Shown here one piece after another: positions 1 through 64,000 of a DNA stretch of 64,000 bases. The stretch is from NCBI GenBank assembly GCA_977017575.1, contig CDRNVI010000052.1:186001-250000 (forward strand), read 5' to 3'. Source of the DNA: Paramoeba atlantica (lineage: Eukaryota; Protista; Discosea). Each line of letters starts with the position of its first letter. The first letter of the stretch is position 1. The translations under genes and the position numbers were made by a program. The notes beneath the pieces were generated by a model. The model was given only the letters and a program-made list of their open reading frames with translations. It had not been told where the DNA came from and ran no database searches.

Positions 1-1
1 T

Positions 2-3191: not shown

Positions 3192-4502
3192 ATGCTTCCC
3201 TTATCAAATGAAGACTCTGTATCAGTGGAATCCGCAACTTCTCCGAGAGAATGTGCGGTACGCGATCAGAGCGTTTCTGTGGAGCGATCGATCTCTGGTG
3301 TTGTTCCTGTTTCAAAAACATTTTCTCGGACCTCCAATCGAGGAAAAACATCTTTGTTGCACAGGGATACATCTGTGAAGTTACTGGACGCAGTGTCTTC
3401 TTTGCGTGTAAGACTTCGCTACGGTCTTCATCGTCGCAGAGAGCTGGAAGAAGCTCTATCAAAGACTTTCGAAGACGTAACTCTGCCCACTCCAGACAAT
3501 ACTTCATCGTGTGTCGGTGCTTCAGCTTTATCCTCATGTACGGATAGTTCTGAAAGCACATCAAAATTTAATCTTGTGGATAACAAAGGCATGCAAGAGA
3601 AAGACGAAACTTCTAATAAGATTCAAAAAATGTCAGAATCAGAACATGTTCCGGTATCCGGCATTGTGGATGAATCTTCTTTGACTTTAGAACATGAAAG
3701 TGACCCAAAAGATCCATCTTCAAATACTTTGAATAAACATTGTTCTGATCAAGAAACAGGTGCTCCTCTGTCGTCTGAAAATATGAATTCAAACAGTCAG
3801 ACTGTATCTTCATCAACGATTGTTTTTTCATTGTATCTTCATCAACGATTGAAAGACGATCTTTTGAAAGCTGAAGATAAGCAAACAACGAACTTCGTCG
3901 GTAAATCAGATTCAACAGAGATCGTACGTGACAGTATTGATACTCAGAAAATGAATTACGATAAGCCTGCGCCACCCAGCAAGGGTTCCACTTTGAAGAG
4001 AAAGCGTATCACGCTAAACACAAAGACAATTTCTATTGTATTTTCACATGCACGAAAGAGTCTGAATGAAGCTGAAAAAGAGCGACACACTGGTGAAGCG
4101 CTTCTTGCAAAGCAGAGGCATGTGCAAAATAGTGCTGAGAAGCGGAACGAAGAAACGCTTCTTCCCACGAAGGTCTTGGATTATCAAGACCCAAAAGCGC
4201 TTCAACAGTGTGTCGCCGATTTATCAGATAAGTTCAGTAAACTATCAGAAGTGTATGAGAAAGCATACATGGCTCGAGTACAACTTCTAAACTTGGCGAA
4301 AAGGTATGGGGACTCAAAAACAAATCTAGAATTAGTTCACGAAGGCGTTACAATATACTTTCGTCCTTCAAAAATGAGCAATGCAATTTATGATGCGTTT
4401 GCAGCTCAAGCCCGTGTAATTGAAAATGAATACGATGCTTTTTGTGTGACAGTTGATTCTATGAAACCTGATATTAATACCTCCTTGGGATTTATCTTGT
4501 AA
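3192..4502 (+). CDS. Hypothetical protein, Ser-rich middle and helical C-terminal half
   Basis: 436-codon ATG-started ORF co-oriented with neighbours; no recognisable family motif. Confidence 0.55.
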   Translation: MLPLSNEDSVSVESATSPRECAVRDQSVSVERSISGVVPVSKTFSRTSNRGKTSLLHRDTSVKLLDAVSSLRVRLRYGLHRRRELEEALSKTFEDVTLPTPDNTSSCVGASALSSCTDSSESTSKFNLVDNKGMQEKDETSNKIQKMSESEHVPVSGIVDESSLTLEHESDPKDPSSNTLNKHCSDQETGAPLSSENMNSNSQTVSSSTIVFSLYLHQRLKDDLLKAEDKQTTNFVGKSDSTEIVRDSIDTQKMNYDKPAPPSKGSTLKRKRITLNTKTISIVFSHARKSLNEAEKERHTGEALLAKQRHVQNSAEKRNEETLLPTKVLDYQDPKALQQCVADLSDKFSKLSEVYEKAYMARVQLLNLAKRYGDSKTNLELVHEGVTIYFRPSKMSNAIYDAFAAQARVIENEYDAFCVTVDSMKPDINTSLGFIL

Positions 4503-5311
4503 TTGAAATATTTTGAAGAATACGTCAAAAAGCTACAATGGCATTTTAGCTCTATTCGCTTGCGGACACATGTTTAAAAATACATTCTTCGTCATATGAA
4601 ATTTCATGTATCTATTGTTATCGACTGAAAGCATCTGTTTTTGCGTACACCTGTAAAAATCTATTCTTAACGATGTTTTCATGACATTCATAGCGTCGTT
4701 TGTGAAAAACTAAATAGATAACATGGGTGTTTTCTATGCAAATACATGTGATACACGCATAAAATACATGCATACAAATACCTGTGATACATGTATAACA
4801 GTACTGTTTCTACCATTTACTGTAAGTAACTTACGTATGCATCCATAAATTTATTTTTGTATCTTTCTTACTTCTGGATAGCTGAACTACCTATTCCGAC
4901 GAACATAAAGTTTGTTTATCATCTCAGTTTTTCTGCTGCACTCGGTGTTTTTGACTAGCGCTATTATTGAAACAAAAGTCTTTTTTTTTAAAATCGGTTT
5001 CTGTTAAAACATAGGTGGCACTTTTCAACGTGAAATCTCGTAGAGGACTAAGAGAAACCGCTATCCTGAACCACAGTAATAATCTTGAAGACTTTTCCCG
5101 GAACAAACCCGAGTTTTTTATTGCATCAAAACAAGATGTTCGTGAGAACTTCAATTTCCAACTTTTATTCGCTTAAAGCATAAAATTTCCTATTTCATAG
5201 TATAAATTTTAATTTTTATTTGACCAAACTTCACATAATAGGATAAAAAGGATCTTGTCTTGGTTAACTTGATGGATAGCTTCTAAATCAGATTGATTTA
5301 TTTTATTAAGC

Positions 5312-6241
5312 ATGATTCTTCGACCTCTTACAAAAGCCCGAAGAATATCTCAAGTATTACGAGCACGTCTTATAGAACCGGATGAAATAAAAATCAAGCC
5401 TAACCAGAGTATTACCGGTTCTGATAGTTCTAGTAGTCCTAAACACTCTTCAACTAATGCTAGAGGTATAAATAAAATTCGTTCTGACACCTATAACTAC
5501 ACAAAGTTAAGAGACTTATTTACTGACCCATACTGGAAAAGCAGCTTGCAAGCAGAATTTGAGAAAAAGTACTTTTTAAAACTAGAAAGACAACTAAATT
5601 TTCTCTGGAATCGCGGCATCACGATATATCCCCCAAGGTCTCAAATCTTTGCCGCTTTTAATGCCACCCCATTGAACCACGTGCGTGTCGTGCTCATTGG
5701 GCAAGACCCCTACCACGGTCCGAATCAAGCCCATGGACTTTGCTTCTCCGTTAGTCCCGGCGTCCCTCCTCCCCCCTCACTGCTTAATATGTACAAAGAG
5801 TTGGAGAGAGACATTCCTGGTTTCGTGACCCCTTCTCATGGCACGCTGCTGTCCTGGGCTCACCAGGGGGTACTGATGCTAAACGCCACGCTCACGGTAG
5901 AAGCCCATAAGGCGAACTCTCACTCTGGTATGGGGTGGCAAACCTTTACCGATGCGGTGATTGATTACGTCAATCGAAAGAAGAAAGGTGTGGTGTTTCT
6001 GCTTTGGGGAAAGTTTGCGCAACATAAGGCGACAGCAATTGACAAGAGTAAGCATTATACGATTGAATGTGCTCATCCGTCGCCGCTTTCGAAGAAGGGG
6101 TGGTATGGCTGCCGTACATTCTCGCGCTGTAACACCGCTCTTCGTGATTTGGAACTTCCGGAAATTGATTGGAAACTTCCCTATAAAATTGAAAATGTGG
6201 CAAGATCACAGCATAGTCCACATAAGAGCATATACACATAA
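5312..6241 (+). CDS. UNG: Uracil-DNA glycosylase family 1
   Basis: GQDPYH water-activating loop, PPPPSL, GVLMLNA, and HPSPLS leucine loop. Confidence 0.95.
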   Translation: MILRPLTKARRISQVLRARLIEPDEIKIKPNQSITGSDSSSSPKHSSTNARGINKIRSDTYNYTKLRDLFTDPYWKSSLQAEFEKKYFLKLERQLNFLWNRGITIYPPRSQIFAAFNATPLNHVRVVLIGQDPYHGPNQAHGLCFSVSPGVPPPPSLLNMYKELERDIPGFVTPSHGTLLSWAHQGVLMLNATLTVEAHKANSHSGMGWQTFTDAVIDYVNRKKKGVVFLLWGKFAQHKATAIDKSKHYTIECAHPSPLSKKGWYGCRTFSRCNTALRDLELPEIDWKLPYKIENVARSQHSPHKSIYT

Positions 6242-6314
6242 TAGCACAGGCCAAATAATTAAATTTCATCTACAGCCCCTCATACGTGTACCGTTACCTC
6301 CCCCCTTAGATATC

Positions 6315-6381
6315 CTAGTACGCTACTTATCCTCTTTTGTGGTGAAACCTCTGGGTCACGAGAGGATAAGTAGCGTACTAG
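6315..6381. repeat. 21-bp perfect inverted repeat (CTAGTACGCTACTTATCCTCT) with 25-nt loop
   Basis: Arm at 6315-6335 and its reverse complement at 6361-6381. The same motif is tandemly repeated at 7418-7487. Confidence 0.8.
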
Positions 6382-7417
6382 TTTACAGAGAAAATTTTCA
6401 GAATTTTTTCATAAAAAAAATCAGTAGTAATTTTTTTAAGAGTTGTGCATAGTTATATTCAGAATAGAAATATATCGATAGATACATGCGCGTGTACAAA
6501 AAAAATATGTTCACCATATAATATACATAGTATACTATAGTATATGTATAGTATAATATACATAGTATACTATTCTATACTACCATACAATATAGTAATA
6601 CTAGGAATACTATACTGTATGTTGTTCCGAGAACTGCTCTTTGTTCTCAGAACACTGAGAACACGATTCTATGATCCCACTTTACATGAAAGGTTCCGTT
6701 GAGCTTTAAAAAAAAATGAGAATCACGATTCGCAGATAGGACCAAACGTTTGTCAGTGAGTATGGCGTTCTTTTTCGACGAAAGATAGCCCATTTCTACC
6801 AAGGCGAGATTACTTTTTCAATTGCGCACTGAATGGTATCGTAATGGAGAGTATGTAGACAGTACCTATAGATCGCTGTAGGTCGCTGGCAGTTTCTGGC
6901 GGGAACTGGAGGACTAACAGTTTCTGGCAGTTTCCGTGGCACAAAAACGGCGAGCGTTAAGACATGTATCAAAGAAAAGGCCATGGTAACATTTTGGTTT
7001 TGGGCAATGTCTGTGCTTGCTCCCGGTGCTTGTTCCTCACCAGAGCAACGTACTTGGGAACATCGTTTGTTTCCACTACATCTGTTGTGGAGCGCTCAGT
7101 CTTGTCAAGGTCGAGTTGCACGGGAAACGAAGGCAGGATCAGGCTGGATAACAGGAGATTCCCTTTTTCAATGAATGATAAAGGATTCTTTTTGACACGA
7201 GCAAGTATCCACCCGGCAAGACTTTATTCGTGCTAGACTTGTACGTAAGTCACCCAACCGAGGCAGCCGAATCCCTTTTTCTTGATTTTGATGTCTCACT
7301 TGGGCAGCGTGCAACTCCGTCGAAAAGAACACATCGGCGAATACACATCGGCGAACACATCGGAGCGGTTGTATCATGCTAAAAACACTTTTGGCGCAAA
7401 GGTCGCTCGAACTTCTT

Positions 7418-7487
7418 CTAGTACGCTACTTATCCTAGTATGCTACTTATCCTAGTATGCTACTTATCCTAGTACGTTACTTATCCT
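7418..7487 (+). repeat. 17-bp tandem repeat x4 (CTAGTAYGCTACTTATC)
   Basis: Directly visible; same motif as the hairpin arm at 6315. Confidence 0.85.
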
Positions 7488-7719
7488 CAAACTGTCCATT
7501 TCGGAGACGGAATGCGGGATATCTAAGGGGTGGTAACGGTATGTTGTTTGGTCTAAAACCTAAATCAGTCGGGGTCGAACGGTGCCATGTGATATCATGC
7601 AATATAACACGAGATCATGTTATATCACACCCTCAGGCCCTCTATCGTAGGAATTCTTTTTGCGTCCAGTACACAAATTCTTAAATTTCTAACATTTTTA
7701 GGAGACGCTTTTTCGAGTC

Positions 7720-8336
7720 ATGTTCACTTTATTCACGGAGAATTTGGCTTTCGCTCCTGTCAAAACAAGCGACCTGCAAGAGCCTCCAACGAAACGACGA
7801 CGTCATGGCAGCAAAGTTAGCCGTCTTGTTCTGCCTGAGGAGGAGATGATGCGTCGCTTTGTTGAACACATCGAGCATCACCCAGCTCCCTGGAAGCAAT
7901 TCGCCTCACCATGTAATTGGAAAGGCGTAAAATGTGATGCAGAAAAAAGAATCACGGCCATTCATTGGAATTATAACAGGATTTCAGGTTCTCTTGCATG
8001 GGCTTATCTTCCGCACGATGTACAGACTATGGAAGCACGTTGTCCAGCGGGTCTGATTACCAAACTTTCTGGTAAGCTGCTCTCCACCGATTTACATAAG
8101 CCACTTTCCACTCTGCTCTTGACAGCTCAAAATCATACCGGAGAATTGGATTTGACACAGCTTCCCGAATCGATGCGTTATTTGGATGTGGGCTTTAATG
8201 AGTTGGCAGGGCCATGTGACTTGACGCAACTTCCTCAAATTCTTGAAAAATTGAACCAATGCGTTTGAAGGTGAAATACGATTGGACATGCTCCCTCCCA
8301 ATTTACGTGAGTTATTCCTTTCGCGAAATCGTTACA
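7720..8336 (+). pseudogene. Leucine-rich-repeat protein, frameshifted and truncated
   Basis: PCNWKGVKC cap and LRRs (GELDLTQLPESMRYLDVGFNELAG). The LRR continues in another frame after about 8220 (NAFEGEIRLDMLPPNLRELFLSRN) and is cut by a repeat at about 8336. Confidence 0.7.
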
Positions 8337-37280: not shown

Positions 37281-38285
37281 CTAATATGTATGACCCCCTC
37301 TCGCACCAATCACTGCTCTCATACGGCGAGGCATGCTGCTCACCGTAGACGCGCATAGGGCACTGGGAAGTGCGTCCCACACAACTTTGGCCCGGCCCCA
37401 AAGCTCGATCATTCCCTCTGTGTCCTTCTTATAGGCAGAGAGACGCCGTTTTGAGTGGCCCCACATGTTCTCAATAGGATTGAGATCTGGGGATTGCGGG
37501 GGCCACTTCAAAACCACATAGCTGTGGCTCGCCAACCACTCTTTGGCAAGCTTGCTTGTGTGTTTGGGGTCGTTGTCTTGTTGAAACAAGACCTCGTCGG
37601 GATCTAGCCCCACTTGCTCAATGGAGGGGGCAAGATTCTGATCCAGAATTTCAACGTACTGATGGGCGTTCAAATTGCCCTCAATCAAACGTATCTTGCC
37701 CACCCCTGCGTGCGCAATGCACGCCCATACCATCAAACTCCCGCCCCCATATTTCACCGTCCCTTCCGTGTTCCGGGAGTCGGGCTTTTCATTCACCCGA
37801 AGCCACACCCAGCGTCTCCCATCCCAACCGAAACGGTTTACTTTGGTTTCGTCCGTCCAAAGTACCCGCTTCCAGTCTTGGATGGTCCAATGCTGGTGCG
37901 CAATTGCAAAGTCTAACCTTTGACGTTTATGGGAGGCCGTGAGTCGTGGCTTCCTTTGCCTGCGCCTCCCGTGGAGACCCTCTTCTCGGAGGTGGAATCG
38001 TACCGTGTGGGTGCTCACATGAGTAACTTCATGGATTTTGAGGTGCTTAGCCACACCTACAGCTGTATCTTCCCGGCCGCTTTGGATGAGGCGGCGCATT
38101 TCACGGGCGCACGTCTCGGTGACCTTACGCGGCCTCCCCCGCTCTGGGTGCGTTACATCTGGACGATGCCGCTCCCGAACCCGACTTACCGTGGACCTGC
38201 TAACGTCCAGTTTGGAGGTGATTTCAAAGATAATCACTCAACAAAATATTTTTTCATAAGATTGAGACATTTTTTAACGTCACTG
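37281..38285 (-). mobile_element. Tc1-family transposon (DD34E-type transposase), 3' TIR missing
   Basis: WTDETK, QQDNDPKH, WPPQSPDLNPIENMW. In-frame ATG at 38270 is followed by TGA at codon 11. CAGTG-type terminus at 38285 with no matching left TIR. Confidence 0.9.
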
Positions 38286-39520: not shown

Positions 39521-39907
39521 TTATATTTTCTTTTTGCCGCGGCGACGACGACTTCCTCGCGTGGAAAGCTGTAAAGCGCCATAGGGAACATGTTCGGATG
39601 GCTATGTAATCCAGGATAAAGTGGACGAGGGTGATACTAAAGGCACCTTTGGAAAACCACCTCGAAACTGGAACGGTATCTCCCGGTTTGTAGAGCATTC
39701 TGATGTGGCAAAAGGGTCTTTAACGGGTGATACCGTTCCAGTTTCGAGGTGGTTTTCCAAAGGTGCCTTTAGTATCTCCCTCGTCCACTTTATCCTGGAT
39801 TACATAGCCATCCGAACATGTTCCCTATGGCGCTTTACAGCTTTCCACGCGAGGAAGTCGTCGTCGCCGCGGCAAAAAGAAAATATAAAGGGGAACACAG
39901 TAATATA
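39500..39907. repeat. Palindrome family P, copy P1 (~185-bp arms, ~38-nt loop)
   Basis: Arms near-identical by eye (two mismatches in the inner ~105 bp); loop GTTTGTAGAGCATTCTGATGTGGCAAAAGGGTCTTTAA. Confidence 0.9.
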
Positions 39908-40016
39908 ACAGTATATCAGTAATAACAAGTCAGAAGTTTCAAAGACAATTTAATAAATTTTATAAAATTGCGAAATTTATAAATTTTTTAAATATCGGTG
40001 ACGCACTTTTTAACGT

Positions 40017-40611
40017 ACCGGTCGAGCGGAAAATTTGGTCCACTTTTATTTGGCCCCAACAAATTTGGTCCACATAAATTTTGGTCCGACTTTATTTTTC
40101 CTTCGGCGGCGGTCCAAAATACTTTTTGACTTTATTGTCAGTCGTTTTTAAAGTTTACTAAATTTAGAACTCGTCATTAGAAATTTTTGCTTCTTTCAAT
40201 CGACACTTCGTTTTTTAGTCTTCGTGTAATGTCTCAGTCTGTTGAATGGGTGCAGAAAATCTTTGATCAAGATATTACTCTACGCACGTAGGGTCATCAC
40301 TATAACACATATAGTGAGGCTGAAGTTAGACCAATTTGAGAATTGTGTGTGACACGAAAGGTTGCAAGTGTTGTGAGCTACTGGAATAGCACGCAAAGCA
40401 AAAACAATCTAAAAGTACGGTCCTTCATTTTCTGGAAAACGAAAAATATAATAACGATATCAAGCCTCGAGGGAGGCCAAGAAAATATATCTTTTTTATT
40501 TCAATGCAGGAAAAATTTGGCCCCAACAATTTTGGTCCACATAAATATTGGTCCGACTTTTTTTTCGAGCTCGAAGGACCAAATTAAAAAAATGTCAAAT
40601 TTTTTGCTCGA
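40017..40611. mobile_element. Possible non-autonomous DNA transposon with imperfect ~20-bp TIRs
   Basis: TACCGGTCGAGCGGAAAATTT versus the reverse complement of AAATTTTTTGCTCGATCGGTA; internal repeated TTTGGTCC motifs. No clean TSD. Confidence 0.4.
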
Positions 40612-41223
40612 TCGGTAATTAAAATGTGCGTTTTTTTAATTAACGTAGCATATTAATTAACGTAACAATTAATTTTGGTAAAAAAATGGTAAAAAAATCT
40701 GTTCTACTTGGGGTCGGCCTAGAAAGGGCCATGTCTCTCTTACTGGGAGGTCTCTTACTGTTGGTTCTCCGGTATCTTTGGAAAGCATTCTCATTGATTT
40801 TTATAAACCCCGTTCCGGTTTAATGTACCTGTAGATCGCTATTGGAGCCCCTGCAACTTGGCGTCTTTTTTGGGTCCACTCGGGGTCACGGTGGGTCACT
40901 AGGGGCCGTGGTGGTCCCCTAGTGACCACTGCTACTTGTCCTTGTTGATCATTTTGTATGTATGTAATTGTTGAGGGAGATACGGAGTATCTAACTCGCT
41001 TACTAAGGTTAATTCCAAAAACTGAAAAAGATCCCCAAAGAAGCATAAGACTGAGTTTTTTCAAAATTCCAAAACGTAGCAGTAGGTCATTAGATGAACT
41101 CTTAAATACTCTAGAAATCATCTAAAACAACCTTATTTCCCAAATTTTAGAACATTTTTCGTAAACAAAAGTGCGTGTGCAAAGGTCTGCGATACGACAA
41201 ACTGGTTGACTAAGGAGCGTCCT

Positions 41224-41295
41224 TTGAGTAGTCCAGTTGGTAAAGGGGTTCCATTTTGACGCTGAACGTCCGCGGTTCGATTCCCGACATTGACA
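41224..41295 (+). pseudogene. Degenerate tRNA (Gln-like TTG anticodon loop)
   Basis: TAGTCCAGTTGG A-box, TTTTGAC loop, GGTTCGATTCCC B-box, downstream TTTT; stems do not pair. Confidence 0.45.
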
Positions 41296-41405
41296 TTTTA
41301 CTAAAAAAATCGAAAAAAAAATTATTTGCTCAAGATCGCCAAAAAAAACAAATTCGGAACAATTCTTTTTTTTCAGATTTTTTTTTCTCGTGCATACGTG
41401 TACAC

Positions 41406-41787
41406 GTGGCACTTACTCTTTCGTGGCAGTGGTGTACTGCCACGTGAGGCAGTGAACGCAGTGTAGATGCAGTGTAAGTGCACTGCCACGTGAGGCAGTG
41501 ACTGCAGTGCAGCTGCATCACGTACGTGAAAGAGTAACTGTACTGCCACGTGAGGCAGTGAACGCAGTGTAGATGCAGTGGCACGTGCGAGAGTAAGTGT
41601 ACTGCCACGTGAGGCAGTGAACGCAGTGTAGATGCAGTGGCGCGTGAGAGAGTCAGTGACTGCAGTGCAGATGCAGTATAAGTGCACTGCCACGTGAGGC
41701 AGTGACTGCAGTGCAGCTGCATCACGTACGTGAAAGAGTAAGTGTGCGGCCACGTGAGGCAGTGAACGCAGTGGTGCGTGAGAGAGT
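41406..41787. repeat. CACGTG-containing minisatellite (~59/76-bp units), left part
   Basis: Recurring ACTGCCACGTGAGGCAGTG hairpin plus GCAGTGTAGATGCAGTG; continues after the IS30 insertion. Confidence 0.85.
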
Positions 41788-43230
41788 TGTGGATTGTCAT
41801 ACTCAGTGCAACACCTTTTTGTCATACTCAGTGCAACAAAAATGAGAAAAATATGGGTGTGTTCCGGATGTCAGGATTTTCGCATACTCAGTGCAACACT
41901 GTTTTTTCGGTCGGACAGCACCACGAACGGACACGGGATTGTATGAGCCATGTTAAGAAAGAAACAATGGATTAAGGAAAAAAAATTATATAAGGAGAAG
42001 AAAAAAGGAGTACCTGGATAATCGATATTGACGGAACAACATAACGCGTTTCTTTAGTAAAGAGATAAACTTTTTACCTTTACTACTTTACAACTTACGG
42101 CTATACAACTTACTGCTTTCATGTATAGTACCGTCTCTTTATAGTAAAATTTGGCCTTCCAAGGTCTTTGGGGAGACCCATTTCAAGCACTTTCGTGGCC
42201 GTTTCTTCAGTTTGTTGGCCGTCTTACTAACTTCGCGCTGTGTCAACCCCTCAAAAGTATCTGACTTGGTGTGATACTACCGGACCAGACCATTCATGTT
42301 TTCAACGGCCCCCTTTTCCCATGAGTGGTAAGGATGACAAAAGTAAGATTTGCATCCTAACTTCCTGTTGATGGCTTCATAATTGGTGTTTTCAGTTCCA
42401 TTGTCATACGTTATGGTATGCACTTTGTATTTCTTTAAGGCTTTCAGCACCTGTGTTTCAACTTGTTTTGACTGCTTGGATTGAAATACACGGACAACAA
42501 ACCTTTCTTTCGTTCACAAAGGGTCAGGATGAAATACCCACTTTTCTTTGCTCCCTCAATTAAATCGGCCTCCCAATCACCATACCGACGTCGTGTGTTT
42601 ACTATTTGGGGACGATGATCGATAGAAACCCGGTTTGGAATGGTACTTCGACCATGAATGCGTCGAACATAAGGCCGCCTTCCGCGGATCCGTAGGCACC
42701 TATGAATCTTCCCCCCATTGTCTTTGTCTCGACGAACAAATCGATAGATTGTGGAGGTGGATGGTGAACCTTGTGAGCCGACAACAAGTGTATTAGCAAC
42801 CTGCTCCGGGCTGTGAAGCTTTCGGAGACGGGTCTTTACACTTTTTTCAAGACTGGCTCGAATTAGACGTGGTCTGGTCCCTTTATTAACCAGTCGTCTC
42901 TTGGCAACACGATGGGCACGTCTGGAACGATATTGCCCACCTCTTTTCCTGTTGCGTGCCAGCTCACGACATACCGCACTTGGGGACTTATCAATCGATC
43001 GGGCAATTTCCCTCTTCGTGGCGCCACTTTCAAACATCGTTTGAATATCTTTGCGATTGTTTTCAGATAATCTTCTGTACTTTGGCATGAATGAACTCAA
43101 TTATGTAGAAATTAGTATATGAAGTGTACTATGTAGAAATTAACCTTTTGTTGCGCTGAGTATGACAATTATTATTATTTTGTTGCACTGAGTAATGACA
43201 ATTTGTTGCACTGACATTGACAATCCACCA
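41788..43230 (-). mobile_element. IS30-family insertion sequence (1443 bp) with 26/27-bp terminal IRs and a 2-bp GT target duplication
   Basis: Left IR TGTGGATTGTCATACTCAGTGCAACA; right IR (reverse complement) TGGTGGATTGTCAATGTCAGTGCAACA. GT at 41786-87 and 43231-32; removing the element and one GT restores the array motif GAGAGAGTAAGTG. Confidence 0.9.
42139..43100 (-). pseudogene. IS30 transposase (~320 aa) with a 1-bp deletion near 42505 and TAG at 42277-79
   Basis: HTH LSENNRKDI...G...REIARSIDKSPSAVCRELARN; SPEQV; RP.IV..RRRYGDWEADLI; after the shift ERK(T)RF..TITYDNGTE..YFCHPYHSWEKGAVENMNGLVR..KRPRKCLKW.SP. Confidence 0.92.
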
Positions 43231-43960
43231 GTAAGTGACTGCAGTGTAGCTGCAGTGGCACGTGCGAGAATAAGTGCACTTCCACGTGAGGCAGTGAACG
43301 CAGTGTAGATGCAGTGGCGCGTGAGAGAGTAAGTGTACTGCCACGGGAGGAAGTGAATGTATTGATGTAGTGCAGCTGCAGTGGCACGTGCGAGAGTAAG
43401 TGCACTACCACTGTAAGTACAGTGGTACGTGAAAGAGTAAGTGTACTGCCACGTGAGGCAGTGAACGCAGTGTAGATGCAGTGGCACGTGAGAGAGTAAG
43501 TGTACTTCCACGTGAGGCAGTGAACGCAGTGCAGATGCAGTGGCGCGTGAGAGAGTCAGTGACTGCAGTGCGAGAGTAAGTGTACTGCCACGTGAGGCAG
43601 TGAACGCAGTGTAGATGCAGTGGCACGTGAGAGAGTAAGTGTACTTCCACGTGAGGCAGTGAACGCAGTGTAGATGCAGTGGCGCGTGAGAGAGTCAGTG
43701 ACTGCAGTGCGAGAGTAAGTGTACTGCCACGTGAGGCAGTGAACGCAGTGTAGATGCAGTGGCACGTGAGAGAGTAAGTGTACTTCCACGTGAGGCAGTG
43801 AACGCAGTGCAGATGCAGTGGCGCGTGAGAGAGTCAGTGACTGCAGTGCGAGAGTAAGTGTACTGCCACGTGAGGAAGTGACTGCAGTAATGCAATGCAG
43901 CTACAGTGGCAAGTTCGAGAGTAATGTACTGCCACGTGAGGCGGTGACTGTATTGATGCA
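43231..43960. repeat. CACGTG minisatellite, right part, with a ~134-bp higher-order unit
   Basis: Same units as 41406-41787; near-identical blocks repeat through 43430-43870. Confidence 0.85.
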
Positions 43961-44110
43961 GTGTGTAGCTAGAGTGGAACGTGGGTGCAGGTGGCTGCAC
44001 ATGAAACACCCACATGAGAGACCGTGCGCCACCAGTGGCTGCACTGGTGTTCCATTTAGAGAGTTTTGTTACAGATCGCCATGTTGTGGAAGGGTGGCCA
44101 GCTGGGAGAT

Positions 44111-44316
44111 AACCCAGATTGAAAGGGTCGAGGGAGATACGAAGCAACAGGCGTGGCAGATTCCCACTGAAAAGAAATGGTATCTCCCTGCACGAAGTTT
44201 GTCTCCGAGCTAGCAAGCGCAAAGGCTTTTCTCGTGCGGGGAGATACCATTTCTTTTCAGTGGTAATCTGCCACGCCTGTTGCTTCGTATCTCCCTCGAC
44301 CCTTTCAATCTGGGTT
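44111..44316. repeat. Palindrome family P, diverged copy P4 (~85-bp arms)
   Basis: Near-perfect arms. Shares AACCCAG..T.AAAG.G..CGAGGGAGATAC, GGTATCTCCC and the GTTTGT...CAAAGG loop with P1/P2. Confidence 0.8.
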
Positions 44317-44319
44317 GTG

Positions 44320-44709
44320 ATGGGAAAAATATATTGTCCTCGCTGCAAGGTGGACCGCCACGTGTCTTTGGGGGAACCTATAAGGTGTGTAATGTGTGCA
44401 TGCACCATTGAAAGTGATGCAAAGGATCCTTGCATCCAATGTCAAAGGGTCTCTGTAATCATAGGTACGAACTACTGTCCTCTATGTAATGCTCCACAGG
44501 ACTCTGAACGACTTCTGCCCAGTGCCATCGACCATCTACACGCTCGTGAGCTTCAAGGGAAGCACAATTTTCGCGCTCTTGCGGATGGAGGGTTTTATGA
44601 AAGTCGCACCAATATGCTGATACTGCCTCATTCAAAGACAATTCCCGTATCAGTTGTCCAAGCAAAAACAGGACCACAAGTGCGAACAATCTCTTTTACA
44701 CTTTCATAG
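44320..44709 (+). CDS. Small Cys-rich multi-zinc-ribbon hypothetical protein (129 aa)
   Basis: CPRC, CVMC, CIQC and CPLC pairs; ATG lies immediately after palindrome P4. Confidence 0.4.
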   Translation: MGKIYCPRCKVDRHVSLGEPIRCVMCACTIESDAKDPCIQCQRVSVIIGTNYCPLCNAPQDSERLLPSAIDHLHARELQGKHNFRALADGGFYESRTNMLILPHSKTIPVSVVQAKTGPQVRTISFTLS

Positions 44710-45078
44710 CTTTTTAGGTCATGTTTTCATAAAATCCATGAATTCCTTAGTGGGGTATTATCAATGCCTAGCACCTGTCCCTCGCCGGAGGTATTTCTCG
44801 TCGGTTTTTGGGTCCACTAGGGGCCACACTGGGCCACTCGGACCCTGCATTGAGTCCATTGTACCGGGGGTGGGGGACAATACGTGGGAACGCTTGGTTT
44901 TATTGTACACCCCCTGCGTAAAAGAGGGCCTTCTTTTGCCTTTTCACAGATTTTCTTTCTAAAAATGATTACATTTTTACCCAAATTAGCAGCGAAGACA
45001 TGAAAATAGCGAAGCTCCGACTATTTTCGGGGAGAATATTTCCCGACTATTTTCGGGGAAGCTCCGAATTCGGGGAAG

Positions 45079-45441
45079 AATTCAAAGTTTGAAGCACATG
45101 GTGCTCAGACGGCGAGTTCAAACCCGCTCATCCCAATATTCCCGGCGGCCTCACTCTAAGAGGCTGGGCTGATAACCGACTAGGTCCAGTACTCGGAGGA
45201 CCGTCCCGGACCCTCCCCTCAGGGAACCAGCTCCCTTACCCGGCTTACACCTCTTGGGTGAGCCGTGTTGACGTACAGTTCGTCGACGCAGCGTGTTGGC
45301 AACATCACGTTGGTGCCTTTGGACAAGCGGAAACTGGTAGAGGACGTCGGCCTCGGAACTTCCAAATCTGTCTGTGAAGGGTCTGGCTTGCCAGTGACCA
45401 TCCAGAGAGATCCGGAATGATTTGGATTTTTTTTGGATTTT
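45079..45441 (+). mobile_element. tRNA-headed SINE, 5'-truncated copy
   Basis: Highly similar to 54051-54441; GGATTTTT tail; possible 7-bp TSD GGGGAAG (45072-78 and 45442-48). Confidence 0.75.
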
Positions 45442-45635
45442 GGGGAAGCTCCGACTATTTTCGTTATTTTTCGGAGTTGTTATTGTACCTGTAGCTACGC
45501 ATTCTACCTGTAGCTAGTTATTGTACCGGGCGGGTACATTAACCCGGACGGGGGTTTAATTACCGGTGAAGCTTTTATTAAGAATAACATTAATTAAAGT
45601 AATTTCTGACGAGAAAAAATGTTTACTTTAATTAA

Positions 45636-46395
45636 TTCTTTTTTAGGCTCTTCGTTACACGCGCTGGTTATTTTCAACTTAGAAGTCACTAATGCTGCGT
45701 GCTTCGCGTTGAAAACTACCACCGCGTTTAAAGAAGATCCTAAAAAAGAAAAATCGCCAAAAGATCATGAATAATCTATTTTTTTGCGTGAAAATGCGCG
45801 ATTTTTAGGCGAAAATTGCGAAATTTTAACCCGAATTTGTACCATTTTTGATGCCTTACCAGTAGGGGTGGGAAGCGAATCAGCCGAAAAAAACGTCGTT
45901 GAATGGTAGCTGAGGCCCAAAACTCTTAAAATGCGTTTTAGGAGTCGATTTTGGAAAAATAATATCTTTACTTTCTTTTGGGTCAAAAAACTTTTTTTTT
46001 GGGTCACCCCAAAAAAATCGGACATTTTGATCTTGTCGGACCCCTCCTGCGCGTACCAGGGGGGGTACCCCCAGTGGGGGGGTGAAAAGTTATCGCCGCG
46101 GCCTACTCTATCACTTCCCTGCGCTCGATTTCGAAAAGCAAAAAATTTGAAAAAACTTTCTTGACGTATGCTCCCCCCTGGACCCCCCCTGGACCGCCCC
46201 CTGGACCCCCCCCTGGACCCCCCTCCCCTAGACCCCCCGTTTTTTTCAATTTCTTTTTTCATTTTCGGACCACCGGAGCCCCCTTTTGTATTTTCTTCTA
46301 TTATATTACTGTGTTTCTCTTTATATTTTCACTGTTTTTGTTCACTTTTTTTTCAATAATCGAGGGTAGAGCGGTACTTATACAACTACCGCAAT
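45636..46395 (+). mobile_element. Fold-back repeat HpA+B, copy 2
   Basis: Collinear with 8971-9706. Confidence 0.7.
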
Positions 46396-47549
46396 GCTAC
46401 GTTAATTAAAGTTACGTCAATTTATGTTTTTGTGGCGTAAGTAAATTTGAGATTTACTATTTTTAAGCCCATAAGATTGAACGTAGTTTGCACACTTTTC
46501 CAAAATTTCCCAAAAGGTAACTAAACATCAACGAATTCCAAAGAAAATCAAGAATAAGCACACTAGAAGGTTTCTGCACAAAACAATGCCCCATCCAACA
46601 AAACTCGTACCAGCGGACTTAACCTCACTTAACAGAAGACGTGTGACCATGATTTCACCCGTACCTGAGAACGTCAAAAGGTCAAAAATACTACAGTGTA
46701 GCAACGACTCTAAACTATGTATTTTGCAAGAAACAGAAACAAAAAAGAATTAAAAAATCGTTTTCTACTTTCGTGAAAAACTAAGCAAACATCGCTCAAT
46801 TCCATCTAAAGCGAAATACTCCACCGCCTATGGGTGTTGTTTCCAAGGGCAACTGGTCGTATTCTTGAGACATCTTCTAGAAATTTAAAAAATGAAATTA
46901 GTAATTATTTTTCGTCATTTTTTGACCAAAATTAATTATTACGTTAATTACCGTAGAAACTTCAATTAAGGGTAATTAAAATTAAGGCAACTTTAATTAA
47001 GGCAGCTTTAATTACACCCAAGCAAAAAATTATTATCGCTAAAATTATTGGCACAAAAATTATTGTTTTTTTAATTATAAGCTGTCAATTTTTGGCGAGA
47101 AACATTTTTTAATTTTTTTGGTCAATTTTTGAATTTCTCATGAGGTCTGATCTTGGCAACCACGTTTTAGAGAAGAGTTCCATAGATTTTACACAAAAAT
47201 TCAAATTTTATGAGAGGATTTGACGCGAGAGAAGCGAGATTGGCTTTATGTCAACACCCGGTCGTGAGATCATGCGAGATCACACCCGCATCCCATCATT
47301 TAATGACCACTTAATAACCTGCCCTTCGCAACGCATTTGGCAAGATTAGAGAGATGCAAACCACCGTCCGGGTTATACCTAGGGACACTTGTGCTTCCTA
47401 AGGATAATAATTTTTTGGCGATAAGCAACTTTCTTCCCCGTAAAAATTCTTGAATCTTTTTGGGAGCAAAAAAACCCTTTCGACCTAATTTTGGGGTTTT
47501 CCGCCCCTCTACTAACAACTTCTATTGTTTGTCAATATGTACAAATTTC

Positions 47550-48623
47550 CAGGGTTCGCAGAAACTATAAAACTATCAATATAGTACTATATAGTTACTA
47601 TAAACTTTTTTCGAAAACTATAAAAAACTATATTTTTTTGTTTCACATTTTAGGCACTCCGAAGCTCACCAACACGCCATAAATACACGGCGAATTCATT
47701 TGTGTACGATTTTTCTTATTTTTAAACCCGAAAATTGATGCCCGAAATTAAAGTTACGAGGGGTAGTTTCTGCAAAGATTATTTTATTGAACTGCTGCAC
47801 ACGGAGGGAAGTAAAAAAGCGGTTGAATGTAACTTGTGTCAGGAGGGGACGTACCCCAGTCCCATCGCGTGGCCTTGACAGATTGCCTTGTGCGAATCTT
47901 GCGTCCCGAACATCTTCTCACTGCATCGCTGTCGCCGCGCTTTGGCTGGAGCCACCGACGTTATGTCTTGGGACTGAATAACTGCTGCTCACAATTCTAT
48001 GAGTTTGAATAAATACAATCATATGAGTCTGAATAAATTACGCGGTGTGTTGTCGAGTGGAGAGTTTGTACTTCCTATCGTCACTCCTTTCGCATGCGTT
48101 TCATTGCCATTTCCGAGGAGATGACACACTAGTTGATGATATTTTTCGGCGGTGATGGAATCGCGGGGAAGAGGGAGCATGTTTCGATAGCTATGTAACC
48201 CAGGATAAAGTGGACGAGGGAGGTTCTAAAAGCACCTTTAAACCACCACAAAAATAGAATGATATCTCCCGGTTTGTAAAGGATTCCGACGTGCCAAAAG
48301 AATCTTTAAGGGACATACCCTTCCATTTTTATGGTGGTTTAAAGGTGCTTTTAGAACCTCCCTCGTCCACTTTAGCTTGGGTTACATTTTTTTCAGAATT
48401 TCTTGTCATATCATACGTATGTAAGCGTGTAAGAACGCATGTAAAGGCGTGTGTATGTCCTTCACAAGCGGAGAGGACTCAAAAAATATCACTTGTAAAG
48501 TGAAAAAAACTTTATAGTTTTCTTATAGTTTTATAGTAAAATATAGTAAATATAGTACTATATAGTAACTATATTCAATGAAAAAAACTATATTTTACTA
48601 TATTATAGTTTCTGCGAACCCTG
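47550..48623. mobile_element. Non-autonomous hAT element (1074 bp)
   Basis: TIR CAGGGTTCGCAGAAACTATA; exact 8-bp TSD CAAATTTC (47542-49 and 48624-31); ACTATA subterminal repeats. Confidence 0.88.
48193..48387. repeat. Palindrome family P, copy P2 (~78-bp arms), inside the hAT element
   Basis: Arms ATGTAACCCA...AAACCACCA / reverse complement; loop similar to P1. Confidence 0.85.
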
Positions 48624-56606: not shown

Positions 56607-58003
56607 AAGAGTACAACACTCAGGGTTCCCGAGCGATCGCTCACCTCAGTACTAACTGAGCCTGGCGGTGCTTAACCTCACAAAGAACAGGATGTGGTGT
56701 TTTCACCGTAGTATGGCCGTACAACCTGCAGGTTGGTGGTTAGATTCCCGCTATCGACAAAACTCGCAACCTGGCGGCCTCACTCAAGGGGAAGCGATCA
56801 GGAGTTCCTCCAAGGCCCATACTCAACCCCGCTCCCCTGGAGGACCGATCTGGAACCGCCGAGCTGAACCAGGCTCCGGCGCAACCGCTAAATTGCGATC
56901 TGCCTACGCAAAGGAGGCTTGAGACACAGCCTAAACGATTCGAGGCGGTTGGACGCCCGTCCTGGTAGCTACGGTTGCGTAGCCGTTCTCGGGCTGCAAG
57001 GTGTCGAGTGCCGTCTGGGAAGGGGGTAGCAAGACAATGAAGGTCAGTGACCTGAAACTCTACCCTAACGGTTGGCGCTGCAGAGCCCTCCGTGTCTTCT
57101 TCTTTTTCTTCTTCTTCATCTTCTTCTTCTTCTTCTTCTTCTTCTTCCGCAAGGAATACATAGATGCATTCCTTGGCAATGTTGTGCCACATGTTTGGTC
57201 ATAGCCTCTTTTTCAAGAGGTGTTTCGGAACACCTGGTATGTGTTTTCCGTTTCAAGGACGTTTTCTGTCCAAAGAAAAGCTGTCCAAAAAAAGCTTCTG
57301 CGGGTTTTGTTCGAAAAAAGTTTTTTTCAAAAAAAATTCGTGCGGTATCCCCCCCCCACTAGACCACCCCCATGGACGCCCCCCATGGACCCCCCATTTT
57401 TTTCATTTTTTTTTTAAATTTTGGCCCTTTTTGATCTTTTGCACAAAGTTGAGCTTCGGGATTCGGAAGGTCACTTTCGAGAAGAATAACTCACCAATTG
57501 TAATAAGTTGATCGTCGTTCGTTCGCTTTTTGTACCTTTTTATGCACTCTTCTTGAGCTTCCGTACTGACTGAAAAATCTTAAAAAGGAAGACGATCACA
57601 ACAACACAACAACAAAGACACTGATATTTGAATATCAGTTAAAGGGTCTGTAATTTACACCATAAAATAGAACCCACCTACGTACAAGCTCACTTGGCTT
57701 TTACGCGTAGAAGCATCTTCTACGACCATGACATACATACTTCCTCATTACTTTCTTTGGTAAATAACCCGTTAGGTGCGAATGCGGCTTCCGGCGCTTT
57801 GCTTTCATAACCATTTGACTTCCTTATCTGTTGGCTCTATATTCCTGTTTTTGCCTAGGGCAAAGAGCGAAAAAGCTTAATAAATCCAAACCTTATTGAC
57901 AAAATCAATATCCTATCTCTCTTCTTCATAAAACGTATATTAATACTAATGGCATAGTGTATTTAACGACTTCCCTTAGCATGGTTTTGCTTTCCTTATT
58001 TGC

Positions 58004-60480
58004 TCAATGAGATCTCCTGGTAGATTTTTGCGTCTTGCTTTCATCCTCTCTAAGCGAGCGTTTTCTCTGAGGGGTTCTTCCCGTAAGTACTGATATGCAA
58101 ACTGGGATCTCATTCTTGACGCGTGTGTCTTCTGCACTCTTGCGCAGTTTTATGCCAATTTTTTCATTGGTTTTGGTTGATTTCCCCTTCGAACGGGTGC
58201 GTTTCAATGTTTTTGATGAAGGGGTTCTACTAACAACTTCATTTTGAGAAAGAGCCTCAGATTTTGGAGGATCGGGTGTTTCCTCTTCAGCCCTCACCTG
58301 TGTAAATGCAAAAACTGGCAAAGTCCGTTTTTGTAACGATTTGAACTTTTGGTCTGTGTTCAGTGGGGTCATGTTTCGTCTTTTGGAGCAGGATTTTTCT
58401 TCCAAACCACGGAAAAAAAAGGAGGCGTTTTCGTCAGACTGTTGATAAGCTCTTTTCGCAAGCCAGTCCGATGTGTCATTATGTGGGTTCCCTTCATGCC
58501 CCCTAACCTTGATGATGAACACGCGTCGGTCAGCTTCTAATTGAAAGCAGGCACGATGTATCTTTGATAAGAGGTCCGAATTTTCAAATTGGTGAAACCC
58601 GAATAGAGAAAACCTGTTCCGAATCACATGGAAAAATTCCCATACATACGCAGAGCCTGTGTGAATGATAATATCCTTCTCATGCTTCATTGCCATCTGC
58701 AGAGCCTCATAGACAGCATAAAGTTCCGCAGCTGTTATTGTGAGTGATATTTCTGACGGAGGTTTTAGTCCTACAAGTGTCTTTTCTACCCGATTGCCCA
58801 ATAACACAATACCGCAACCTGATGAAATTCCTGTTTTCGTTGTTCTTAATGCGCCGTCTGTGTATAAATGCAAGGAAGTGAAAAGGCACCGCACCTTCTT
58901 CTACGAATTGTAATGACGAGTAGACTTTTTGCTTCATTGAATCCTGTTTGGTTTTTTCCCATCTTGGAGATTCTATAGGAAGATAATTCGGACGTGGCTC
59001 AAGGCGCGCCTTTAAACGATCAACATTAGAGCGCCAGCGTGTTCTGTCTTTAGAAATTTGAATAACATCGGGAACAGACAAGCCTAGATCATCGGAACAA
59101 GATTCAGACAGACAGGTTTGCGTCTTTCGTTCCGCCACACTGAAAGGAGAATCGTGTCGAAGAAGATGGCCTATAAGCTGCGCTCTCTGTATTTTCGCCA
59201 CCGTGCTAAGCTTTGAATCATTTTGGTACAGAGCTTCTGTTCGAATACCCCTTTTCCCATCCCAAGTACGGCCTACACCACACACCATTCTGCGCATTTT
59301 GTTTACCTCAATATCTAATTCCCGGAGCCTATTGGTTGATATATCCCATGTTCCTGAATTATATTGCACTACTGGCATCACAAGTGTACGGAATACTGTC
59401 ATACGGCTCGAGATTGGCAAAGGTGATTTCCAGATCGGCCTAAGTTTATGCATCAATGCCCACCCAAGTCTCATTCGTTCGTTGGGTGCAACATTTCGAT
59501 CCTCGCTTTCCTGCGTGCTTCCTAGGTAGCGGTATTTGTAAACTCTGGGGATATGCCCTATACCCGGTATTATAAGTTCGCCCCCGCTATCAGAAACCTT
59601 TCCAACAGTCATCCAAGCAGTTTTATTGACCCCCAAGTTAATACTGAGGTTTTCGTTCCGAGCAGCTCGGTAAAGACTCTCTAACATGTCAGTGAGTTCT
59701 ACTTTAGATGAGGCAAATAAGACTATATCATCGGCGTAGTCGATATCCGAGATACGCAAATGTTTCTCACCACGGCTTTTCGATCCTGTAGAATATGTTA
59801 TTAAACCAGACCCTTTAGTATCGAGCGCTTCTGCCAATATCCGATCGAGTACCATGATAAACAGATAGGGTGCGAGAAAGTCTCCTTGCAGAGTACCATT
59901 GGGTCATTATGGTAACACCGTAACTCCGCATGAATGCCACGGCCTGGTGTAGACGATAACTGCGACGTAGAGCAAATGCGTCCGCGGACTTGCATTTCAA
60001 TGTGTCCACATTTAGGGTGCTCACCACAAACCCCCCTCTCATAGCTTGAATCTTCGGTCTCTGCTCTCGGGCGCCACGCCGAAAACAGGTTTTGCGCTTC
60101 CGATTGCGTCCGTGTAATGATTTTGGGAGTATTCCAACCCTGCCGCCCAGCACATGGACACGTTCATCTCTCGGTGGAAACGGGAGGAGCCGTCCATTCA
60201 TCAAGTCGTACTTAACAAGCCAATTAGACCCGCCAAGCGAAGAATGAACAACCCCTTCCCAAAGTGTAATGCGTTTGCGGTAGGCCATGCGCCAAACAAC
60301 GGCCACACGTTTTCCAACTCCAAAAACCTTCGACATCTGCAAACGGGCCTGCTGCCGGAGTTTTATTACACCACCCCTCTGCTTTGGTTGCAAAAAGAGG
60401 TTGCCCCGACCACACCTGGCCGTTAGGAGTTTGTCACGAACTTCCAACAAACCATCGAACGGTCCGGAGGCCTCCGCCAT
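58004..60480 (-). mobile_element. Degenerate, internally deleted APE-type LINE (RTE-like RT) with RNase H
   Basis: APE start VSTLNVDTLK joined at about 59900 to RT GTLQGDFLAPYLF, YADD, YRYLGS. Frameshift to RNase H: YTDGA, AELYAV, TGSAYV, KVRGHEGNPHNDTSD. Confidence 0.85.
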
Positions 60481-60494
60481 TTTGTATCAACGTA

Positions 60495-63400
60495 TTAATA
60501 CAAAAAGTGATCTCAATACAAAAAGTGATCTTAATACAAAAAGTGATCTTAATACAAAAAGTGATCTTAATACAAAAAGTGATCTTAATACAAAAAGTGA
60601 TCTTAATACAAAAAGTGATCTTAATACAAAAAGTGATCTTAATACAAAAAGTGATCTTAATACAAAAAGTCATCTTAATACAAAACGTGATCTTAATACC
60701 AAAAGTGATCTTAATACAAAAAGTGATCTTAATACAAAAAGTGATCTTAATACAAAAAGTGATCTTAATACAAAAAGTGATCTTAATACAAAAAGTGGTC
60801 TTAATACAAAAAGTGATCTTAATACAAAAAGTGATCTTAATACAAAAAGTGATCTTAATACAAAAAGTGATCTTAATACAAAAAGTGATCTTAATACAAA
60901 AAGTGATCTTAATACAAAAAGTGATCTTAATACAAAAAGTGATCTTAATACAAAAAGTGATCTTAATACAAAAAGTGATCTTAATACAAAAAGTGATCTT
61001 AATACAAAAAGTGATCTTAATACAAAAAGTGATCTTAATACAAAAAGTGATCTTAATACCAAAAGTGATCTTAATACAAAAAGTGATCTTAATACAAAAA
61101 GTGATCTTAATACAAAAAGTGATCTTAATACAAAAAGTGATCTTAATACAAAAAGTGATCTTAATACAAAAAGTGATCTTAATACCAAAAGTGATCTTAA
61201 TACAAAAAGTGATCTTAATACAAAAAGTGATCTTAATACAAAAAGTGATCTTAATACAAAAAGTGATCTTAATACAAAAAGTGATCTTAATACAAAAAGT
61301 GATCTTAATACAAAAAGTGATCTTAATACAAAAAGTGATCTTAATACCAAAAGTGATCTTAATACAAAAAGTGATCTTAATACAAAAAGTGATCTTAATA
61401 CAAAAAGTGATCTTAATACAAAAAGTGATCTTAATACAAAAAGTGATCTTAATACAAAAAGTGATCTTAATACAAAAAGTGATCTTAATACAAAAAGTGA
61501 TCTTAATACAAAAAGTGATCTTAATACAAAAAGTGATCTTAATACAAAAAGTGATCTTAATACAAAAAGTGATCTTAATACAAAAAGTGATCTTAATACA
61601 AAAAGTGGTCTTAATACAAAAAGTGATCTTAATACAAAAAGTGATCTTAATACAAAAAGTGATCTTAATACAAAAAGTGATCTTAATACAAAAAGTGATC
61701 TTAATACAAAAAGTGATCTTAATACAAAAAGTGATCTTAATACAAAAAGTGATCTTAATACAAAAAGTGATCTTAATACAAAAAGTGATCTTAATACAAA
61801 AAGTGATCTTAATACAAAAAGTGATCTTAATACAAAAAGTGATCTTAATACAAAAAGTGATCTTAATACCAAAAGTGATCTTAATACAAAAAGTGATCTT
61901 AATACAAAAAGTGATCTTAATACAAAAAGTGTTCTTAATACTAAAAGTGATCTTAATACAAAAAGTGATCTTAATACAAAAAGTGATCTTAATACAAAAA
62001 GTGATCTTAATACAAAAAGTGATCTTAATACAAAAAGTGATCTTAATACAAAAAGTGATCTTAATACAAAAAGTGATCTTAATACAAAAAGTGATCTTAA
62101 TACAAAAAGTGATCTTAATACAAAAAGTGATCTTAATACAAAAAGTGATCTTAATACAAAAAGTGATCTTAATACAAAAAGTGATCTTAATACAAAAAGT
62201 GATCTTAATACAAAAAGTGATCTTAATACAAAAAGTGATCTTAATACAAAAAGTGATCTTAATACCAAAAGTGATCTTAATGCAAAAAGTGTTCTTAATA
62301 CAAAAAGTGATCTTAATATAAAAAGTGATCTTAATACAAAAAGTGATCTTAATACAAAAAGTGATCTTAATACAAAAAGTGGTCTTAATACAAAAAGTGA
62401 TCTTAATACAAAAAGTGATCATAATACAAAAAGTGATCTTAATACAAAAAGTGTTCTTAATACTAAAAGTGATCTTAATACAAAAAGTGATCTTAATACA
62501 AAAAGTGATCTTAATACAAAAAGTGATCTTAAGACAAAAAGTGATCTTAATACAAAAAGTGATCTTAATACAAAAAGTGATCTTAATACAAAAAGTGATC
62601 ATAATACAAAAAGTGATCTTAATACAAAAAGTGATCTTAATACAAAAAGTGATCTCAATACAAAAAGTGATCTTAATACAAAAAGTGATCTTAATACAAA
62701 AAGTGATCTTAATACAAAAAGTGATCTTAATACAAAAAGTGATCTTAATACAAAAAGTGATCTTAATACAAAAAGTGATCTTAATACCAAAAGTGATCTT
62801 AATACAAAAAGTGATCTTAATACAAAAAGTGATCTTAATACAAAAAGTGATCTTAATACAAAAAGTGATCTTAATACAAAAAGTGATCTTAATACAAAAA
62901 GTGGTCTTAATACAAAAAGTGATCTTAATACAAAAAGTGATCTTAATACAAAAAGTGATCTTAATACAAAAAGTGATCTTAATACAAAAAGTGGTCTTAA
63001 TACAAAAAGTGATCTTAATACAAAAAGTGATCTTAATACAAAAAGTCATCTTAATACAAAAAGTGATCTTAATACAAAAAGTGATCTTAATACAAAAAGT
63101 GATCTTAATACAAAAAGTGATCTTAATACAAAAAGTGATCTTAATACAAAAAGTGATCTTAATACAAAAAGTGATCTTAATACAAAAAGTGATCTTAATA
63201 CAAAAAGTGATCTTAATACAAAAAGTGATCTTAATACAAAAAGTGATCTTAATACAAAAAGTGATCTTAATACAAAAAGTGGTCTTAATACAAAAAGTGG
63301 TCTTAATACAAAAAGTGATCTTAATACAAAAAGTGATCTTAATACAAAAAGTGATCTTAATACAAAAAGTGATCTTAATACAAAAAGTGATCTTAATACA

Positions 63401-64000
63401 AAAAGTGATCTTAATACAAAAAGTGATCTTAATACAAAAAGTGATCTTAATACAAAAAGTGATCTTAATACAAAAAGTGATCTTAATACAAAAAGTGATC
63501 TTAATACCAAAAGTGATCTTAATACAAAAAGTGATCTTAATACCAAAAGTGATCTTAATACAAAAAGTGATCTTAATACAAAAAGTGATCTTAATACAAA
63601 AAGTGATCTTAATACAAAAAGTGATCTTAATACAAAAAGTGATCTTAATACCAAAAGTGATCTTAATGCAAAAAGTGTTCTTAATACAAAAAGTGATCTT
63701 AATATAAAAAGTGATCTTAATACAAAAAGTGATCTTAATACAAAAAGTGATCTTAATACAAAAAGTGGTCTTAATACAAAAAGTGATCTTAATACAAAAA
63801 GTGATCTTAATACAAAAAGTGATCTTAATACAAAAAGTGATCTTAATACAAAAAGTGATCTTAATACCAAAAGTGATCTTAATACAAAAAGTGATCTTAA
63901 TACCAAAAGTGATCTTAATACAAAAAGTGATCTTAATACAAAAAGTGATCTTAATACAAAAAGTGATCTTAATACAAAAAGTGATCCTAATACAAAAAGT
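60495..64000. repeat. 18-bp tandem satellite (TTAATACAAAAAGTGATC)n, about 195 units, extending past the window
   Basis: Constant 18-bp phase with substitutions only. A cluster of variant units at 62261-62385 recurs 1386 bp (77 units) later. Confidence 0.97.

Follow-up and report, generated by a model that had tools for sequence, protein, structure and literature searches.

Bacterial insertion sequences of the IS30 family, such as IS30 of E. coli, IS1655 and ISApl1, encode one transposase, about 315 residues long, in which an HTH_38 domain at the N-terminus precedes a D-33-E core; they have terminal inverted repeats of about 26 nt and produce target duplications that range from 2 to 3 bp within the family. 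IS30 itself duplicates 2 bp of its target and moves by a copy-out-paste-in route through a circle or abutted inverted repeats, followed by staggered cuts in the target (PMC9333248). Other DDE families are found in both bacteria and eukaryotes, namely Merlin with IS1595-IS1016, IS3EU, IS481EU and Tc1-mariner with IS630, all of them present in multiple copies with terminal inverted repeats and target duplications. Eukaryotic IS607 elements are shared between bacteria and eukaryotes in the same manner but use a serine transposase. To our knowledge only a few prokaryotic IS families have entered eukaryotes and kept transposing there. When all the major IS groups were compared with 430 eukaryote genomes, IS607 was the only one found (Gilbert and Cordaux 2013, PMC3673617). 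The statement made in a preliminary description of the present DNA, that IS30 is not an established eukaryotic superfamily, agrees with that survey and held in the literature searched. In this search, which had most subscription journals as well as Repbase and Dfam outside its range, the term 'IS30EU' gave no matches and nothing relevant was retrieved on IS30 in kinetoplastids, in protists or among eukaryotic superfamilies.

The window, by which is meant the whole stretch of 64,000 nucleotides that was analysed, contains a broken IS30-family transposon that transposed within a eukaryotic nuclear genome. It shares with the bacterial elements the single transposase with its HTH_38 domain and D-33-E core, terminal inverted repeats of similar length, the short target duplication and the tip GG[C/T]GGATT, which is that of the nearest bacterial clade. 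Unlike the bacterial elements it is located in a eukaryotic nuclear genome, with flanks of one-directional, kinetoplastid-style genes, and it measures 1.44 kb, with a 350-bp non-coding 3' part, whereas its bacterial relatives measure about 1.08 kb. Moreover it has three 20-nt motifs at each end, as against a single inverted repeat in the bacterial relatives that were examined. Its multiple copies, terminal inverted repeats and target duplications are those of the DDE families common to bacteria and eukaryotes, but its protein scores as IS30. Several inward-pointing transposase-binding repeats per end are also characteristic of the IR-DR ends of Tc1-like elements (Sleeping Beauty, Tc3) and of the subterminal repeats of hAT, P and CACTA elements. 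The transposases of all these are nevertheless unrelated to the one described here, for which the 20-nt sites are putative binding sites. Taken as a whole, the locus is very probably a defective DNA transposon with an IS30-family DDE transposase, one of a family that resides in the nuclear genome of a protist of deep-branching, kinetoplastid-like type.

The element and its transposase gene

The element is placed on the minus strand at 41788-43229 (1442 bp) and has a single gene inside; homology with a full copy at another locus (L003) begins and ends exactly at these positions. No second IS30 copy was detected within the window by tblastn and blastn. With 140 bp of non-coding DNA upstream of the gene and 350 bp downstream, the element exceeds the size of compact IS30 elements (about 1.0-1.25 kb). 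Its GC content is 44%, like that of the host. Patterns of bacterial promoters and terminators were found within it at chance level and no more, and a structured RNA in the 3' non-coding part was considered and set aside, the fold z-score of -1.68 not being convincing.

The transposase pseudogene occupies 42139-43088 on the minus strand (316 codons). Its N-terminal and middle pieces matched the IS30-family profile NF033563 of NCBIfam with 112.8 and 84.3 bits respectively, both above the cut-off of 80 bits, and Pfam recognized HTH_38 at residues 3-46 together with the integrase core rve. The other IS profiles reached 30 bits at most on the same pieces (IS21 30, IS481 26, IS630 15), and the IS3 profile was absent among the NCBIfam matches. 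Membership of IS3EU or IS481EU was rejected, since IS481 obtained only 26 bits against 84-113 for IS30 and IS3 was not matched. These profile matches agree with the preliminary description, which had recognized an IS30 transposase from a set of motifs, all of them present in the translation. For alignment the gene was read through with an X placed at both breaks, giving 316 codons. Aligned with 133 relatives, this reading keeps nearly all of the residues invariant in the family, including D175, D229 and E263, whose columns are 99-100% conserved among the 134 sequences; D229 and E263 are 33 residues apart. The intact protein of a sister subfamily in the same assembly aligns over 99% of its length, with about 40% identity, to annotated transposases of bacterial IS30 elements on plasmids.

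The lesions of the gene were called by aligning the window copy with three other copies of the same assembly. Two deletions, within 42492-42506 of the minus strand, are private to the window copy: a 1-bp deletion at about 42504-42506, which causes a frameshift where the sister copies read ERK-S-RF, and an in-frame deletion of 3 bp at 42492/42493. The L003 and L001 copies have neither of them. An in-frame TAG at 42277-42279 (minus strand, alignment columns around 973) is common to the window copy and the L003 copy, which are at different loci, and is replaced by CAG in the L001 copy. The gene had previously been described as having only a 1-bp deletion and one nonsense codon; both are present in the alignment, although the word "only" has to be dropped in view of the 3-bp deletion. 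The dN/dS values among copies are 0.58-0.71, calculated from only 6-9.5 synonymous changes, and indicate near neutral decay.

Because the TAG is common to two loci, the window and L003 copies probably descend from a template that already bore the stop, with the transposase supplied in trans. The presence of TAG in both copies could instead be due to gene conversion or to a parallel change, and the 270-residue product, in which the DDE residues are kept, might still be active as a transposase. With descent from a damaged template as the preferred reading, the earlier proposal that the element was integrated by its own transposase can be maintained in part: transposition in the eukaryote is upheld, and the role of the element's own enzyme becomes doubtful, given that the TAG is also in L003. 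Intact copies, which the preliminary description had proposed to look for, are represented in the sister subfamily by a gene of 315 residues; no intact gene of the window copy's own subfamily was seen among the called proteins.

Ends, insertion site and copies at other loci

The terminal inverted repeats at 41788-41813 and 43204-43229 match at 22 of 26 positions when aligned without gaps (25 nt at 88% by the inverted-repeat search, repeat I1). The repeat on the side of the gene's 5' end is GGTGGATTGTCAATGTCAGTGCAACA (43204-43229, minus strand) and carries the tip GG[T/C]GGATT, and that at the 3' end is TGTGGATTGTCATACTCAGTGCAACA (41788-41813, plus strand), conserved in L003 and L001. The same tip is common to the window element, to the sister subfamily represented at L004 and to the bacterial relatives, and reads GGTGGATTGTCA and TGTGGATTGTCA in the window element and GGCGGATTGTCA in the L004 element. 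The 20-nt motif TTGTCATACTCAGTGCAACA occurs three times at each end, always pointing inward, and one of the three falls within the terminal inverted repeat. The two subterminal copies on the side of the gene's 5' end are at 43149-43168 and at about 43181-43201, the latter with a 1-nt insertion (both on the minus strand; same layout in L003 and L002). On the opposite side they are at 41819-41838 and 41879-41898 (plus strand; same layout in L003 and L001). The sites span 110 bp from the tip at the gene's 3' end and 81 bp at its 5' end, and the complete 3+3 layout is conserved in L003. The 14-nt core of the motif occurs five times in the window, whereas 0.38 occurrences would be expected by chance. 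In the L004 subfamily the motif has diverged to TT-TCA....CAGTGCACCA, and one end of that element has three copies, the opposite end two or three; its right tip is too diverged for the boundary, tips or duplication of the element to be placed. In the L001 copy (3915-3945) two of the three repeats of the 5' end have been lost by a deletion between repeats 1 and 3, so the repeat arrays appear to recombine.

The element interrupts a 59-bp satellite of the host, and both flanks were assigned by the repeat analysis to one array, which extends over 41400-41787 on the left and 43233-43888 on the right (plus strand). The trinucleotide AGT is found at both ends, at 41785-41787 and at 43230-43232. When the flanks are joined without the element and without one AGT, the resulting 40 nt match an uninterrupted monomer of the array (41634-41673) at 36 positions, in agreement with the earlier observation that removal of the duplication restores the host array. 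The duplication had been described as GT and the end of the element placed at 43230. The GT is certainly doubled, but so is AGT, and the other copies in the assembly, which end ...CCACC, move the end to 43229. From the ends and flanks of these other copies a duplication of 3 bp is the most likely. A 2-bp duplication with a variable extra base may also be considered but fits less well.

As background to the choice of target, IS30 prefers near-palindromic hot spots. Two of the three target sites that could be reconstructed here are palindromic around the third duplicated base, AGATG-A-CATCT in L003 (about 5300-5320) and CGAC-AGGTG-GTCG in L001 (about 5110-5130), and the window site is not palindromic. 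A preference for palindromic targets is not claimed, two out of three sites being too few.

Copies of the same subfamily are present at three other loci (L001, L002 and L003) with unrelated flanks, and in all four copies homology ends exactly at the inverted ends, which in the window are 41788 and 43229. Three of the four have both ends, each bearing a short duplication of its own: AGT/AGT in the window, TGA/TGA in L003 and the imperfect pair AGG/TGG in L001. Further copies with different duplications, suggested beforehand as a check on transposition, have in this way been found. The L003 copy is full (3861-5307) and 96.2% identical to the window copy; the L002 copy is truncated at its 5' end and 99.6% identical. 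Among the neighbours of the sister copies are reverse transcriptase, Tc1/mariner and LRR genes. Every relative above 50% identity that was traced to a contig belongs to assembly ERZ24900291, where such relatives are spread over seven or more other contigs, and the closer matches that were looked up (P0301 and P0349) are fragments of the same assembly.

A second contig of 10.2 kb (ctg2714l, L066) repeats positions 39789-48087 of the window in its positions 1-8300 with 99.99% identity, the IS30 copy and its junctions included. This contig is either redundant or a haplotig, and since it derives from the same read set as the window its support for the junctions is modest. In the gene call of this contig TGA was read through as W, that is, another genetic code was used in the call. 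The L002 copy is surrounded by reverse transcriptase and tyrosine recombinase (Phage_integrase) genes at 374-3895 and 4796-6867, a setting that points to a DIRS-like retroelement, by which the IS30 copy may have been interrupted. Another prokaryote-related transposase family is represented at L001, where a Merlin-like gene with DDE_Tnp_IS1595 (1-111) is separated by about 4 kb from the IS30 copy there.

Bacterial relatives and origin of the lineage

GTDB was searched in a set of 185,579 prokaryotic species represented by a single genome each, and here the best matches that covered most of the query had 46-47% identity. All of these came from metagenome-assembled genomes (MAGs), including those of a betaproteobacterium and a member of the Akkermansiaceae, and one fragment of 48 residues reached 71%. 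The best match in the JGI metagenomes had 50% protein identity; on its contig the IS adjoins a putative IS66-family transposase. The intact protein of the sister subfamily was compared by HMMER with 1.84 billion representatives, and its best matches, once fragments of its own assembly are set aside, were at 43-46%. A near-identical bacterial copy, which the preliminary description had named as a point against its reading, was not found in these searches, bacterial and metagenomic matches remaining at or below 50% apart from the short fragment.

A maximum-likelihood tree of 134 sequences was calculated with midpoint rooting, only best hits being sampled. The window copy and two further host subfamilies (P0004, and P0006 with the intact protein of 315 residues) formed one clade with an SH-aLRT of 100 and a stem of 0.54. 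The three subfamilies are 56-58% identical to one another. Under midpoint rooting this clade is six nodes deep, nested among bacterial IS30 sequences, and its sister is a clade of 42 bacterial sequences from MAGs and metagenomes (SH-aLRT 94). Members of the latter are compact (1076-1089 bp) and have GGCGGATT at both ends. In two of them the ends were examined, and these bear one inverted repeat each and no subterminal repeats. The target duplications of the bacterial relatives are inconsistent, only L024 showing AAC/AAC, and no conclusion is based on them. The tree, the tip that has been kept and the repeats that have been added together fit a single entry from bacteria, followed by long residence and by co-divergence of the enzyme with its sites.

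It is likely, in our judgement, that IS30 founded a eukaryotic lineage, an 'IS30EU'. Its history would comprise one entry, long residence, division into subfamilies, the rebuilding of the ends with multiple sites and the recent mobilisation in trans of defective copies, for which the two copies with 99.6% identity and the intact 315-residue gene of the sister subfamily can be cited. The start would most likely have been one transfer from a bacterium to the protist, after which the element would have lengthened from about 1.08 to about 1.44 kb through the subterminal repeats and the 350-bp 3' non-coding part. By analogy with IS30, the N-terminal HTH of the transposase would bind the 20-nt motifs and the DDE core (D175, D229, E263) would cut at the GG[T/C]GGATT tips. 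Copying out would proceed through a circle or a junction of abutted ends, and insertion into a target cut with a stagger of 3 bp would give the AGT duplication. The window copy itself would yield no full-length enzyme; it was most likely made from a damaged template and moved by a transposase supplied in trans, and the frameshift and the 3-bp deletion would have arisen after insertion. Circle or dimer junctions with abutted ends, which had also been proposed as a check, were absent from the window and from the sister-copy loci examined.

Three other explanations have to be weighed. The lineage may be real and yet already catalogued, in Repbase, in Dfam or in a genome paper in a subscription journal, and then it would not be new. 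IS3EU, IS481EU, Merlin and IS607, which are also prokaryote-like families, were catalogued in this way, and the literature search was thin on subscription journals, with repeat databases outside it. However, 'IS30EU' was without matches, no paper in the literature searched pairs IS30 with eukaryotic transposons, kinetoplastids or protists, and the survey of 430 genomes yielded IS607 alone (PMC3673617), so that earlier cataloguing is considered unlikely. A passive transfer, in which bacterial IS30 DNA was integrated once and multiplied afterwards through segmental duplications alone, no transposition having occurred in the protist, would accord with the failure to see an intact gene of the window copy's subfamily. 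Against it, homology stops exactly at the inverted ends in all four copies, the copies have unrelated flanks and those with both ends, three in number, each show a short duplication of their own. In addition no bacterial flank accompanies the element, and the 3+3 repeat layout is derived and absent from the bacterial relatives checked, all of which makes such a transfer very improbable. That the assembler fused a copy from a co-cultured bacterium to protist DNA is hardly credible even though all the data come from a single ENA assembly (ERZ24900291), because both flanks consist of the same host satellite and form an intact monomer when joined, the sister copies have duplications of their own beside reverse transcriptase, Tc1/mariner and LRR genes, the GC content of 44% is host-like, bacterial matches do not exceed 50% identity and the second contig has identical junctions.

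The view expressed in the preliminary description, that the element transposed in host DNA and is not passive bacterial sequence, is therefore retained on account of the sister loci with their own duplications, the eukaryotic flanks of 36 kb, the bacterial identity of 50% or less and the second contig. If an IS30 lineage has indeed multiplied and diversified in a protist, it would constitute a link at superfamily level between the DNA transposons of bacteria and those of eukaryotes. It would moreover show a compact bacterial element remodelled for the nucleus, with multiple putative binding sites per end and a longer non-coding part. A polycistronic, trans-splicing host would offer a testable case for the expression of such a gene. 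It should also be possible to use the intact transposase of the sister subfamily and the defined 20-nt sites as a small system for testing at the bench.

Host DNA around the element

The long open reading frames in the first 36 kb of the window are nearly all on the plus strand and encode eukaryotic proteins, among them a cyclin, UDG, GRASP55/65, CBF/Mak21, Rad4, SNF2 and a DEAH helicase. The best named match of the DHX8/Prp22 reading frame is from Perkinsela sp., with 55% identity. Since the eukaryotic genes lie on one strand and a match to Perkinsela was obtained, the host is a eukaryote with a kinetoplastid-like gene layout, probably a deep-branching one, an assignment drawn from one protein (DHX8) plus the gene layout. 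The 3' part of the trypanosomatid spliced leader gave no matches as a query and has no share in this assignment, and a tRNA scan of the window found none. The sole Rfam match in the window is a 5S rRNA gene at 56608-56724 on the minus strand (75.6 bits). The paper on the host genome (PMC11613528) makes no mention of IS elements.

Other mobile and repeated DNA is present in the neighbourhood. An intact-looking Tc1/mariner-type reading frame of 318 residues (DDE_3 and HTH_Tnp_Tc3_2) at 37281-38237 on the minus strand is about 3.5 kb from the IS30 copy, and a similar gene is found near the L003 copy (7347-8078). Overlapping reading frames at 58004-59855 (minus strand), with RNase H and a weak match to RVT_1, are probably a LINE-like retrotransposon. 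From 60495 to 64000, and continuing past the end of the window, there is an 18-bp satellite, TTAATACAAAAAGTGATC, in about 195 copies with 97% matches, 23% GC and a strong skew of A over T.
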